This document shows positions 38,608-45,119 of a stretch of DNA of 64,000 nucleotides, one piece after another. The notes beneath the pieces are model-generated. The model saw nothing but the letters and a program-made list of their open reading frames with translations, ran no database searches and was not told the DNA's origin. The translations under genes and the position numbers were made by a program. Numbering within the stretch: the stretch's first letter is position 1; every line of letters starts with the position of its first letter. The stretch covers positions 143,882-207,881 of the forward strand of contig MU626270.1 in assembly GCA_025603075.1 (NCBI GenBank), given 5' to 3'. Origin of the DNA: Neoconidiobolus thromboides FSU 785 (Eukaryota > Fungi > Entomophthoromycota).

Positions 38608-39312
38608 CTAATTCTTTACAACACCAACTTGTGCTGGCCTTATTACTCTCCCATTCAAAGTATAACCTACTTTTTCAACAGCGAGGATGGTATCAGACTC
38701 TTTTCCTGGAACTGGTGCTTTATAGAGAGCTTGATGCATGTTAGGATCGAAAGGTTCTCCGACAGGGTTAATAGGTAACACACCATGGTTTTTTAAGGTC
38801 TTTAAGAGCTCAGTTTGAGTCATTGAGACACCAACGTGGAAGTCAGAAACAACCTTGGAACTTTCAATTTGTTCTTTACCTACAGATTTCAAAGCCATTT
38901 CCAAAATATCAACGGTGGATAACAAGTCTTTAACAAATTTTTGTAAGGCAAAGTTGGTGGCGTTTTCCATATCTTTTTTGGTACGTTGACGAAGATTCTC
39001 CATATCAGCTAAACTTCTTAAGTAATGATCCTATTACGATTAGTTTTAGTCGAAATGTTATAACTATTGTATTACCTTAATTTCAGCAATTTGTTTTTCT
39101 TTTTCTTTGATTAACTCAGCTACCTTTTCGGATGTTTCTTCTTTGGCTTCCTCTTTAGTGGCCTCTTCAGCTTTTTTTCCATTTACATTATTTTCCTCAA
39201 TTTTTAAAAATCTGGAGTATTGGATACTACGGGATTGATTGGCACGTAATGAGGCGGAAGGCATCAATCCTTTTTTAAGGATTGGACGGAATAATAAGTT
39301 CATACGATTCAT
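38608..39312 (-). CDS. MGE1: Mitochondrial GrpE nucleotide exchange factor (2 exons)
   Basis: Arg-rich presequence, ADMENLRQRTKKD, FALQKFVKDLL, and GEPFDPNMHQA...KVGYTLNGRVIRPAQVGV. Confidence 0.95.
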
Positions 39313-40317: not shown

Positions 40318-42785
40318 ATGTTCACTAACAACAACAGATTTGGATCAAGTAAATAGCTTTTTTAATAAAATCGAGTAAAATTAACAATTTTAAGCATCAG
40401 TAGGATTTTCTGGGACGCCTTCTGGTTTCAATAGTAATAGTTTATTATTATAGCATAATTGTTACTCATAAATTAGATTTAGGAAGTGCAAATCCTTTAG
40501 GTCAAGGTCAAAATCAAAATCAGAATCAAGGTTAGAACATTTTATACACTTTCAAATTAATTTATCATGATTCATAGTTTACAATCAAAATACTGATGTA
40601 AACCAACATAACACACTTTGTCTTTAATTCTTAAATATATATCTAATAACAATTTAGTTCAATATGCGAAGTGCCCTAATTTAACAGGAGATTGGTATGG
40701 AAATGGTTATGGAACTGAGATGGAAGGTCACAAAAGCACTTCTTCGAGAGAATTCAAAGTCAATGATTTATCTATCGCCTCTACAATGTACTTTTCTTCA
40801 ATTATATTTCAAGAAAGATATCTCAAGTTTTCGGAGGATGAATTGAGAATGCAAGATTATATAAATGGACGTGTATTTTCTGAACTTAAAAACAAAAATA
40901 GTAAGTTTATTTTTTATTTTTGATTATACAGTTACTAACAATATCAGTAACTTACCCTAATAATGGAACAAAACTATATGATTATTCAATAGATATTATT
41001 CCTAGTGAGGAAAAAGAGAAAGCATTAAAATATTTTTCGATCGAATTGATGCCTGAATTTAAAGGCTATTCAGTGGATGAGTTAAGAATGGTAGATTACA
41101 AAAATGGATATATCTTCCGTGGTGACCAAATAAATAATAAAGCTATCACCTCAACTGGAACTGCAACAGGGACTGGATTCAATAGAAGTCAAAGTGTAGG
41201 CCTAACCCAAACTTCAGCAGGTAGTGGATTTAATTTTGGACAAAATACTGGAACTTCAGGTTTTGGGCAAACCATTGGTACCAGCAGCACATTCGGACAA
41301 AATGCTGGAACTGGGGGTTTAGGTCAAACTTCAACTGGATTTAATTTTGGACAAAATACTGCAGCTAAAAACATTGGTCAAACATCAAGCTCTGGGTTTA
41401 ATTTTGGACAGAATACTGGAGTAGGAGGATTTGGGCAAAGTAATACAGCTGGTGGATTTGGACAGAATACTGTAACCAGTGGATTCGGGCAGAAGACAGG
41501 AACTACTGGATTCGGGCAAAATACTGCAACTAGCGGATTTGGGCAAAGTAGTGCAGCTGGTGGATTTGGGCAAAATACTGCAACCAGTGGATTTGGACAG
41601 AATACTGCAACCAATGGGTTTGGGCAGAAGACAGGGACTAGTGTACTTGGTCAAAGTGCTGGAACTGGTTTATTTGGTCAAAATACTGGAGCTAGTGCAC
41701 TTGGACAAAATACAGGTATTAATAATTCATTCGGCCAAAATACCGCAACTACTCTACTTGGAAAAGGTGCTGGAACTACAGGCTTTGGACAAAATCTAGG
41801 AACTAACACACTTGGTCAAACTTCAACCCCTGGTCTTAACTTTGGGCAAAACAATGGAGCTACCAACTTAGGCCAAACTTCAACAAGTTCTGGGTTTAAC
41901 TTCGGACAAAATACCACAGCCAGTGGATTTGGGCAAAAAACAGGCGCTAATATACTTGGACAAAATACTGGTACTAGCGTACTTGGGCAAAATACTGGGA
42001 CTGGTCTGTTTGGACAGAAGACGGGCACTAGCACACTTGGGCAAACTCCTGGAACTGGTGTGCTTGGACAAAGCACTGGAACTAGCATATTTGGACAAAA
42101 TACTGGGCTTACAAATTTTGGCCAAAAGATTGCACCAGCACAGAATGCTTTTAACTCGCAATCAACTATCTCCGGGATTGGCACTAATCTTGGGAATGCT
42201 AGTAATTTATTTAGAGGCCAACAACCTGGCTTAAATACATCGGTTCAAAATAACAATTCTAACCTCCCAGTTTACAGCCTTGCCTCTGAATTTAATCCAT
42301 TTGGAAATATAGCTGTTTTGGAGAATGCTAAGCCAGTACCCAAAAAGGAGGTCAAGCAAGATGAGAGATTAGCTCTTAATAAGGACCTCATAGCGACAAT
42401 GTTCGATAGCAAAGAATTTATAGGAGATATAGATCCAAGGCCATCCATTTCTCTCGATCATAAACCTACTGTGTTGAATAGCCAGCCTGGTCTTTTACAT
42501 AAAGAGAGCACAATAATTCCTGAAAAACCTTGGACTTCTGAGCATAATGACGATCCCAAGGATACCTCTCTTAAAGGTCCCTCAAAGGTTACTCCTGTAA
42601 TTTCTATTGATAAAGACAAATTCGTTGATTTGTTTTCACGTGATGGATTTTTAGCTAAAGACGTCCCTTTACCTGAAGCAGCATACCCTGTTTCAACGGA
42701 TAATACAAGTACAAATATAGTCAGAAAAACAGTTAGCGTCAAAGAAACTCTAAAAGAGTTGTACGTCTCAGATGACGAATCTTAA
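40318..42785 (+). CDS. FG/GLFG-repeat Nup98/Nup116-like protein with two GLEBS motifs and no autoproteolytic domain (multi-exon)
   Basis: Short 5' FG exons (MFTNNNRFGS..GFSGTPSGFN), GLEBS-1 FSSIIFQERYLKFSEDELRMQDYINGR, GLEBS-2 YFSIELMPEFKGYSVDELRMVDYKNG, dozens of (F/L)GQ(N/K/S)T repeats including two GLFG, then NPFGN and a stop at 42785. The 5' splice pattern is partly uncertain. Confidence 0.8.
41220..42125 (+). repeat. Coding minisatellite of roughly 27-36-bp units encoding FGQNT-type repeats
   Basis: Near-identical units, for example ggatttggacagaatactgtaaccagt (41454) and ggatttggacagaatactgcaaccaat (41589). Confidence 0.9.
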
Positions 42786-43192: not shown

Positions 43193-44691
43193 ATGGCCCA
43201 ATATTCTTTAAAGGAGATTGAAGTAGGTGACAAGATTATTAAAATTTAGAACTTGGCTTTAACCCATTCAGAGTCGCTTAGGAAATGATTCCATTATTAT
43301 AGACAGATTAATTGAAGCTATACCAACTAATATCTATAAGCTTGGAACTTCTGGAGGACCCGCTGCTGTAAGTTTTTTTATGATTAATTCGATTGAAGCT
43401 AATTAAGGTAGGCTCCTAAGCAACTTGCTCAAAAAAGCAAGAATTCTAAACCAGATAACAATAAATCTTCTAACGCTCAAAAGGTTTTAAGCTATTCTTC
43501 GACAAAAACAATATTAACTCAAAGTTTAGGCGGCCAAAGAAGAGAAGAAAAACAAAAACAACAAGGATAATGCTAAAAGTAAAAAAAGAAAGACAGTTGA
43601 TGTGAAAAAAGAAGAGTCAGATAATGAAGATGAGGACCTAGATAACGATGCAATCGAATTTAACGAAAATGAACAAGAAGGTAAAGGATAGTTTCCAGAC
43701 AGTATATAATATCTAAATAAATTTTTAGAGGTAACTGACAAACCAGTTGTAGATATAAAAAAAAAGGAGGAGTTGCGGGAACAATTAAAAAAGATGATCG
43801 AGTCAAAGAGACAAGAACGTAAAGCAGAGGATCCAAAAAAAGTGGCAAAGAAAAGAGAATCAAAAACTAAAGATAAGAAGAAGGAAAAAGAAGATAAAAA
43901 AAGAAAGATCAATACCACGATTGTACCTGAAAGAGTAAGTTATTTAATTGAATCAAATGGGTTGATTAAAACTATGTTTAGGTTGTAGTTAATGAGGCTG
44001 AATTATTCAAAAACGTAATTTTTCTTATCAATATTGAGGTCATTAACTTTGATTTAGAGTTCAATTAAGTCCGCTGATTCTATTGTAGAAAACGCTCCTA
44101 TTTCATTTAGTAAATTTGAATTTGAAGGAGTACAATATAAGAAAAAAGGCCCGAGTACAGCACATAACCTTCTCCAAAAAGTAATATTACTAGTATATAT
44201 CAGAGGACAAAATAATAACAATTTAGGTTGAATCAGAGAAAAGCAAGATAGAAAAGGTTATGCAAGAGGATAAAGAAAAGGTAGTCAAAAATTTTGAATT
44301 ATATCATAACTAAAATATAATTAAAGGCCAGTGCATTGATTGAAAAAAACAATTGGAAAAAGGCACTTCAATTAGCAAATGGAGAAAAAGTCAAAGACGA
44401 TCCAAAGCTCCTTAAAAAAACAATAAAGAGACAACAACAAATTAAGAATAAAAGTAGTAAAGAATGGTAATAAATTTAAGCATACTGTTAAATCTTACTT
44501 AAATCAAAATTAGGAGTGATCGTAAGACTAAAGTTAAAGATGATGAGGCAACAAAACAATCTAAACGTACTGCAAATCTTCAAAAACGTATTGATGCTAA
44601 AAAGAATAAACGCTTGGGTATCAAACCTAAAAAAGAAGCCTTTAAGCCAAAAAGCGGTGGTAACAAATTTAAAGGAAAGAACAAGAAATAA
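43193..44691 (+). CDS. RRP14: Ribosome biogenesis protein Rrp14/SURF6 (multi-exon)
   Basis: N-terminal IIDRLIEAIPTNIY (RRP14 domain), a Lys/Glu-rich middle, and the SURF6 block DDPKLLKKTIKRQQQIKNKSSKEW..RTANLQKR. Confidence 0.88.
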
Positions 44692-45119
44692 GTTTTAGGT
44701 AGAAGATAGATCCAAATACTGACATATAATCAAATATAAACCCATACTTATCATAGATAGATTTAATTAAAAGAATAAAGTTGATGACTTCTTGACATTA
44801 TTTAGTTTAAAAAAATTTTAAAATTAGACTAGCTATGATAGATTAAAATAAAAATAGATATATTTTATTAGCTGTTTAAGTAAATTAAGTTAGACCAGCT
44901 GTGATAGATCAAAGGTTTAAAAATAAAATAGATATAGTTCCTAGCGAACAGTATACGTAAGGGGAAAAAAGAAATCATTTAATTAGTAGAAAAATAGTTG
45001 AAATTTTAAGTTGCTATCCTATTTAAAACTTTAAATATTTAATGAAATATCATTCCTTACATTGAATATTTTCATTTAATAAAGTCAACTTGGATTATTA
45101 ATTAAGCACTAATTACAGT

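Follow-up and report, generated by a model that had tools for sequence, protein, structure and literature searches.

A probable Nup98/Nup116-like FG nucleoporin with tandem GLEBS units and no C-terminal autoproteolytic domain in Neoconidiobolus thromboides

The gene and its product

The window analysed here is a stretch of 64,000 nucleotides (contig C13, 143882-207881) of the 24.6-Mb assembly of Neoconidiobolus thromboides FSU 785, a fungus placed by taxonomy look-up in the Entomophthorales. On its forward strand, at 40318-42785, lies K502DRAFT_362722, a five-exon gene for a protein of 734 residues (P0001) which, like its counterpart in Entomophthora muscae, is named only ‘hypothetical’ in public records. 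The gene probably encodes a lineage-conserved phenylalanine-glycine (FG) nucleoporin resembling the N-terminal two thirds of Nup116/Nup98, in which the GLEBS motif (~55 residues), the docking site for Rae1/Gle2, has been duplicated in tandem, and from which the C-terminal autoproteolytic domain (APD) is absent. The protein begins with a short FG head, which is followed by two adjoining GLEBS units (~55-65 aa each), an FG array of 360 aa and a tail of ~190 aa. The features of the gene, in window coordinates, are as follows.

40318-42785, + strand: whole coding region of K502DRAFT_362722, 734 aa (P0001), from the NCBI protein mapped back onto the window
40318-40348, 40395-40433, 40477-40530, 40658-40900 and 40948-42785, + strand: the exons, from the mapping of P0001 to the window
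40318-40530, + strand: the three short 5' exons, which code for the FG-like N-terminal head, predicted in the annotated model
40349-40394 and 40434-40476, + strand: introns 1 and 2, between the 5' exons, predicted in the annotated model
40531-40657, + strand: intron 3, 127 nt, from splice-site enumeration and the mapping of P0001
40687-40887, + strand: GLEBS unit 1, residues ~52-118, from hhalign and the E. muscae alignment
40789-40872, + strand: core of GLEBS unit 1, residues 86-113
40901-40947, + strand: phase-1 intron of 47 nt separating the GLEBS units, from splice signals and the same position and phase in E. muscae
40956-41120, + strand: GLEBS unit 2, residues ~126-180, from Pfam and a profile match to 3MMY_B
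41031-41108, + strand: core of GLEBS unit 2, residues 151-176
41136-42215, + strand: FG array, residues 186-545, from composition and repeat count
42216-42782, + strand: charged, proline-rich C-terminal tail, residues 546-734, with no APD, from AlphaFold2, Pfam and PDB searches
42783-42785, + strand: stop codon TAA

The limits 40318-42785, which a first-pass annotation had drawn from the DNA alone, are exactly those of the annotated gene. The intron that it had placed at 40901-40947, between the two GLEBS motifs, is also real: its donor reads GTAAGT, its branch site TACTAAC and its acceptor CAG, and it occupies the same aligned position, in the same phase, in the E. muscae orthologue P0002 (locus L011). 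Intron 3 is atypically long compared with the 43-47 nt of the other introns of the gene. Well-formed internal splice sites within it would permit a 20-nt micro-exon at 40578-40597 and an alternative acceptor at 40671. The homology searches described below used single exons or the public protein P0001.

Since the exon model rests on annotation and genomic splice signals and has no RNA basis, and since it combines tiny 5' exons with a long third intron that offers an alternative micro-exon path, the gene might be suspected of being an annotation artefact, or a decaying remnant of Nup98, in which chance open frames have been joined. However, its last exon holds an open frame of 1.8 kb, three intact E. 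muscae genes or copies have the same architecture and share the intron position, and both GLEBS units contain many invariant columns, all of which makes this explanation very improbable.

The head (residues 1-45) is N/Q/G-rich and contains one FG together with GFS/GFN, some 41 of its residues coming from the three 5' exons. The main array is built of ~32 repeats with a strict period of nine residues, their type being N-T-x-T-S-G-F-G-Q (xFGQ); of the 22 FGQ that it contains, 11 are GFGQ and 2 GLFG. It is rich in G, T, N, Q and S, with no acidic residues (D+E 0%) and few basic ones (K+R 2.8%). By comparison with published values for the composition of Nup98 FG domains (PMC4283134), residues 186-545 qualify as a long, nearly uncharged, disordered FG domain of the cohesive, Nup98-like type. 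In about ten of the 32 repeats, clustered in the distal half of the array, the phenylalanine is replaced by leucine or isoleucine (L-G-Q or I-G-Q).

The stop codon is reached after the FG array without an APD, as the first-pass annotation had stated, although the tail that follows the array is ~190 aa in length rather than the ~170 aa given there. The tail is predicted to be disordered: an AlphaFold2 model has a mean predicted local distance difference test (pLDDT) score of 47, a predicted template modelling (pTM) score of 0.12 and nearly no secondary structure. In an ESM Atlas model the protein as a whole has a pLDDT of 0.43. The tail has no credible match in Pfam and no relative in a sequence search of the PDB; a Pfam match to eIF-5a was rejected as sub-threshold noise. 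Word-index protein searches with the tail or with the twin-GLEBS region returned nothing beyond P0001 itself. The best conserved site in the tail is N-P-F-G-N-I (42294-42311), just after the FG array, which across E. muscae and N. thromboides takes the form N-P-F/Y-G-D/N-I; in the paralogue on contig C17 described below, the FG region is likewise followed by P-F-G-D-I. The motif could be a linker element common to these proteins, or simply the last FG motif. A similar S-P-F-G-D element may follow the FG domain in human Nup98, but a narrow profile around N-P-F/Y-G-D/N-I reached no Nup98 chain.

The flavour of the repeats, GFGQ/xFGQ rather than GLFG, raises the question of whether the protein derives from Nup98/Nup116 at all, or is instead another FG nucleoporin, of the Nup42-like or Nup49/57-like GFG type, that acquired GLEBS secondarily. 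An ESM Atlas feature search with the tail does rank Nup42-family clusters first, at 0.83. Neither of the two Atlas searches scored higher than this, and the calibration supplied with the tool puts anything below 0.9 at chance level. The order of FG, GLEBS, FG and disordered linker is that of Nup116/Nup98, and the Nup98 homologue TbNup158 is itself dominated by GFGQ repeats (PMC4283134), so that FG flavour does not decide the matter of a Nup98 origin. A separate origin is thus a poor candidate, to which we give little weight.

The two GLEBS units

The first-pass annotation had described two divergent but complete GLEBS motifs on either side of the intron, each with a GT-containing lead-in, and comparison of the units bears this description out. 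The lead-in of unit 1 has invariant W, G, G and G-T residues and its core ends in D-E-L-R-M-Q-D-Y, whilst that of unit 2 has the form P-N-x-G-T and its core ends in D-E-L-R-M-V-D-Y. BLASTP aligns unit 1 with unit 2 over a 30-residue core with an E value of 3e-6. When profiles of the two units, built from P0001 and the E. muscae proteins P0002, P0011 and P0013, are compared by hhalign, they are matched at 97% probability (E 4.6e-11) over 55 columns, which include the G-T lead-ins. The shared core is also unique within the genome. A degenerate DNA pattern for D-E-L-R-x-x-D-Y finds two sites in the 24.6 Mb, both in this gene, and a reversed control finds none; the corresponding pattern for E-E-L-R-x-x-D-Y has no site in the whole genome.

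Unit 2 can be connected to known structures. The four-orthologue profile of unit 2, with the N. thromboides sequence first, reaches chains 3MMY_B, 7BYF_B and 4OWR_B with E values of 8e-6 to 9e-6, and the E. muscae unit 2 alone finds the Nup98 GLEBS chain of 3MMY with an E value of 0.0018. The E. muscae orthologues of unit 2 also score 35-40 bits against the Pfam family PF21240 (Nup98_GLEBS), above its curated cut-off of 27 bits. As judged from these profile matches, unit 2 is a homologue of the Nup98 GLEBS of known structure, and unit 1 is a diverged duplicate of unit 2; unit 1 is regarded as GLEBS-derived because hhalign ties it to unit 2. A match to the bacterial structure 4RAA, obtained in a single-sequence PDB search with the N. 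thromboides GLEBS region, was discarded as spurious.

The hidden Markov model search for GLEBS and Nucleoporin2 domains that the first-pass annotation had suggested as a check gave a divided answer. The Nucleoporin2 family was not found in the protein, as anticipated, but the GLEBS family was matched below its cut-off by unit 2 (15.1 bits, E 0.024) and not at all by unit 1 in a Pfam search of the protein. A genome-wide six-frame scan with PF21240 likewise gave 14.9 bits at 41031-41099. A second site in that scan, on contig C30, was set aside as non-coding noise. The profile of unit 1 aligns with 4OWR_B and 3MMY_B over the full length of the hairpin, with E values of 0.16-0.28.

This disparity could mean that the units are not equivalent, with only unit 2 a working Rae1/Gle2 site and unit 1 either a site specialised for another propeller, such as a Bub3-like or second Rae1-like protein, or only a low-affinity helper. 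Apart from the missing Pfam match of unit 1 and its weak alignment to the PDB chains, compared with 8e-6 for the profile of unit 2, it may be significant that unit 1 reads Q-E/P-x-Y-x-K-F where M-P/K-x-Y is canonical, and that the unit-specific lead-ins and cores have been kept in both genera, as would suit distinct roles. Yet unit 1 retains the acidic pair, the L-R-M-x-D-Y core and an alignment with Nup98 over the whole hairpin. One of the E. muscae copies has lost the first acidic residue of its unit 1, and the hallmark patterns described below found no convincing partner by which specificities could be told apart. Unequal units are therefore a tentative alternative, possible without being favoured.

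The acidic pair itself deserves comment. In human Nup98 (E201/E202) and in Nup116 (E154/E155) these residues form salt bridges to two arginines of Rae1/Gle2 (PMC3783196). Both N. thromboides units have D-E at the aligned position, and the E. muscae units have E-E, except that unit 1 of P0013 has L-E. An AlphaFold2 model of the twin-GLEBS region by itself has a pLDDT of 35, with short helices only at the two E-L-R-M-x-D-Y stretches. This is what would be expected of peptides that fold on a partner rather than of a stand-alone domain.

The arrangement seems to be old. An exhaustive HMMER search with residues 40-195 against 1.84 billion representative sequences found one true cluster of relatives, E. 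muscae P0002 (E 6e-21), and word-index searches with an E. muscae query matched only E. muscae copies. In E. muscae, which belongs to a different family, the Entomophthoraceae, at least three copies, 611-655 aa long, show this same layout. Two of the E. muscae genes, DSO57_1016432 and DSO57_1016435, share one 387-kb contig; the loci concerned in this species are L011 (QTSX02005682.1) and L026 (QTSX02005037.1). Across the four proteins, 24 columns of unit 1 and 22 of unit 2 are invariant. Each N. thromboides unit is more similar to the E. muscae unit in the corresponding position (50-53% identity) than to the neighbouring unit (41-43%). The tails align weakly, at 26-29% identity. Since the architecture, the pairing of units by position and the intron between them are all shared, the duplication and the APD-less state are likely to be older than the split between Neoconidiobolus and Entomophthora, and both units appear to have been kept since before these two families of Entomophthorales separated.

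GLEBS repetition is not unique to N. thromboides. A NUP98A-like protein of Salvia splendens (XP_042009968.1, P0008) has eight GLEBS stretches by Pfam and keeps the APD, and two FG-rich proteins of Castilleja foliolosa (KAL3620732.1 and KAL3620728.1; P0003 and P0005) have three to five GLEBS and end in a RING finger. Several metagenomic proteins found in the exhaustive HMMER search carry two or three GLEBS. However, the plant arrays are near-identical, recent repeats of independent origin, whereas the fungal pair is old and its members have diverged. One metagenomic protein (P0004, JGI, 781 aa) has three near-identical GLEBS-like units mid-way in a large non-FG protein. A full-text literature search found no paper on ‘tandem’, ‘two’ or ‘multiple GLEBS’, and none on the plant arrays.

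The motif class extends beyond nucleoporins. The GLEBS of Bub1/BubR1 (Mad3), which binds Bub3, is a short peptide that uses conserved glutamates to fold across the top of a Rae1/Bub3-type propeller, and the N. thromboides units share this class of motif. Bub1/BubR1 (Mad3) are nevertheless checkpoint proteins with TPR and kinase regions and no FG repeats, and Pfam finds neither TPR nor kinase in P0001.

The APD and Nup96 elsewhere in the genome

The first-pass annotation had held that the protein lacks an APD and that too little DNA, about 400 bp, remains before RRP14 to encode one. Both statements stand. The family PF04096 (Nucleoporin2, peptidase S59) was not found in P0001. The 3' neighbour is SURF6/RRP14 (43194-44700, + strand; PF04935, E 4e-15), whose likely ATG near 43194 lies ~408 bp beyond the TAA, leaving neither room nor an exon for an APD. 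A tblastn search with the APD from contig C17 found no match in the 64-kb window, nor within 6-10 kb on each side of two E. muscae genes. The possibility of an APD-like fold in the C-terminus, named in advance as grounds for abandoning the claim, was examined with the AlphaFold2 model of the tail, which contains none. On the 5' side, the neighbour is a mitochondrial GrpE homologue on the opposite strand (38608-39312, - strand; PF01025, E 4e-41).

The same annotation had called the gene a paralogue and had proposed, as a check, that the existence of a separate canonical Nup98-Nup96 gene be verified. No such gene is present in the assembly. A six-frame scan of the genome finds a single PF04096 site, at C17:124996-125382, in a gene (C17:123520-125443; L002 8522-10000 and L003 1-443) for a short GLFG protein, in which ~250 aa of SLFG/GLFG repeats are joined by a linker to the APD. 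No GLEBS was found in this gene by eye, with PF21240 or in a search with the twin region from the window. Its APD is unusual: the Pfam match ends ten positions before the end of the domain, T-G-D stands in place of H-F-S, and a stop follows 12 residues later, without a Nup96 part. From its residues, this APD appears to be non-catalytic. Nup96 (PF12110) is encoded by a separate gene with its own ATG (C201:26562-28411; L010 7563 onward), ~1 kb downstream of a UDP-glycosyltransferase-like gene. GLEBS, APD and Nup96 thus lie on three genes, and there is no canonical Nup98-Nup96 precursor in the assembly. The twin-GLEBS gene is indeed for an FG protein of the Nup98/Nup116 kind, as had been proposed, but it does not supplement a complete Nup98 encoded elsewhere; of all the genes in the assembly, it is the only one in which the scans detect a GLEBS of the Nup98 type.

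It is useful to set this arrangement against the known systems. The protein resembles Nup116 of Saccharomyces cerevisiae and vertebrate Nup98 in having a short FG head, GLEBS, a long uncharged FG domain and a disordered linker, in having a GLEBS core in which L-R-x-x-D-Y comes after an acidic pair, and in the homology of unit 2 to the Nup98 GLEBS crystallised with Rae1. It differs from them in having two tandem GLEBS rather than one, in having no C-terminal S59/APD and no fusion to Nup96, in that its repeats are of the GFGQ/xFGQ type, recurring every nine residues, and not GLFG, and in having only ~45 residues of FG head before GLEBS. In yeast, GLEBS is found on Nup116 and not on its paralogues Nup100 and Nup145N, and all of them keep the APD fold (PMC4283134). 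The Nup100/Nup145N type, with GLFG repeats and an APD but no GLEBS, is represented in N. thromboides by the gene on C17. The split into a GLEBS-bearing and a GLEBS-less paralogue is thus as in yeast, but in N. thromboides the APD is found only on the GLEBS-less paralogue, where T-G-D replaces H-F-S. What appears to be new here, on the evidence of the sequences, is a Nup116/Nup98-like FG-GLEBS module with a duplicated GLEBS and a lost APD that is conserved in Entomophthorales.

Proposed docking and retention at the pore

A mechanism can be proposed in which the functions of Nup98 in N. thromboides are divided over the twin-GLEBS gene, the APD gene on C17 and the Nup96 gene. The uncharged FG array of the twin-GLEBS protein would become part of the pore's cohesive FG phase. 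Each of the two GLEBS units would fold on binding over the top of a Rae1/Gle2-type beta-propeller, making contact through the conserved acidic pair (D-E) and hydrophobic residues, so that each molecule could tether one or two export-factor propellers. FG cohesion, possibly with the help of short motifs in the tail, would hold the protein at the pore in place of an APD. On this reading, the units would dock propellers of the Rae1/Gle2 type and the protein would be pore-resident.

Retention without an APD has a competing reading, that of the first-pass annotation, in which a protein with no APD would not be pore-resident and would act as a soluble or condensate FG factor, or as a decoy for Rae1, in mRNA export or mitosis. 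The protein has no folded domain anywhere, as judged from Pfam and the structure models, and a yeast strain with minimal linkers can dispense with neither the GLEBS, the FG nor the C-terminal domain of Nup116 (preprint 10.1101/2021.10.26.465796). The last result implies that a GLEBS carrier without an APD needs some other, putative, means of retention at the pore. However, the linker regions R1-R3 of Nup98-family proteins, together with the FG repeats, also bind the scaffold, including the inner ring (preprint 10.1101/2021.10.26.465796), and absence of the APD therefore does not show a lack of anchoring. An unanchored factor also fits poorly with an architecture common to two families of Entomophthorales, and with a gene through which, as the sole detectable source of a Nup98-type GLEBS, any docking of Rae1 at the pore would have to go. 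Because it holds this position, the twin-GLEBS protein is more likely to be the normal docking site for Rae1 than an unanchored decoy, and the soluble factor seems to us unlikely.

The first-pass annotation had suggested that the protein could bind two Rae1 molecules, or Rae1 and Bub3. A further elaboration is that the two GLEBS units, being old and differently specialised, dock two different propellers of the Rae1/Bub3 type on one chain, for instance Rae1/Gle2 and a divergent paralogue, with anchoring through the APD left to the separate, GLEBS-less GLFG protein. This is conceivable but rather doubtful. Neither Rae1/Gle2 nor Bub3 was identified in the assembly with three degenerate hallmark patterns; two of the patterns gave only noise and the third matched other WD40 genes. 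One WD40 gene (C81:29164-32196; L021, exons ~1477-1896 and 1883-2122) has a Bub3/Rae1-like shape by eye. It contains G-S-W-D-K-C-I-K-I-W-D and F-A-T-G-G-S-D-G-V-V-N-I-W-E, without the F-K-C-H-R hallmark; its exons find only generic WD40 proteins in PDB searches, and a six-frame search gave no paralogue of it.

The failure of these patterns to find a propeller partner, together with the essential C-terminal domain of Nup116, the sub-threshold score of unit 2 and the missing match of unit 1 in PF21240, the poor E values of unit 1 against the Nup98 chains, the FG flavour of the array and the basis of the exon model, weighs against a duplicated, APD-less relative of Nup116/Nup98. In our view, this reading remains the probable one.

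If, beyond this, the APD is left to the GLFG protein and the two units dock different propellers, the gene would be a natural experiment in which GLEBS function needs no APD in cis and one nucleoporin can couple two propeller clients. With different clients for the two units, it would be a first case of a single nucleoporin coupling two propeller factors. For a protein that does reside in the pore, anchoring through FG cohesion or linker motifs would suffice for the docking of Rae1. The pore of N. thromboides would be unusual also in that its APD gene and its Nup96 gene both stand alone. Models drawn from yeast and vertebrates place the docking site for Rae1/Gle2 on a protein that is fastened by its APD; in these Entomophthorales the site appears to have been doubled and the fastening to be absent.

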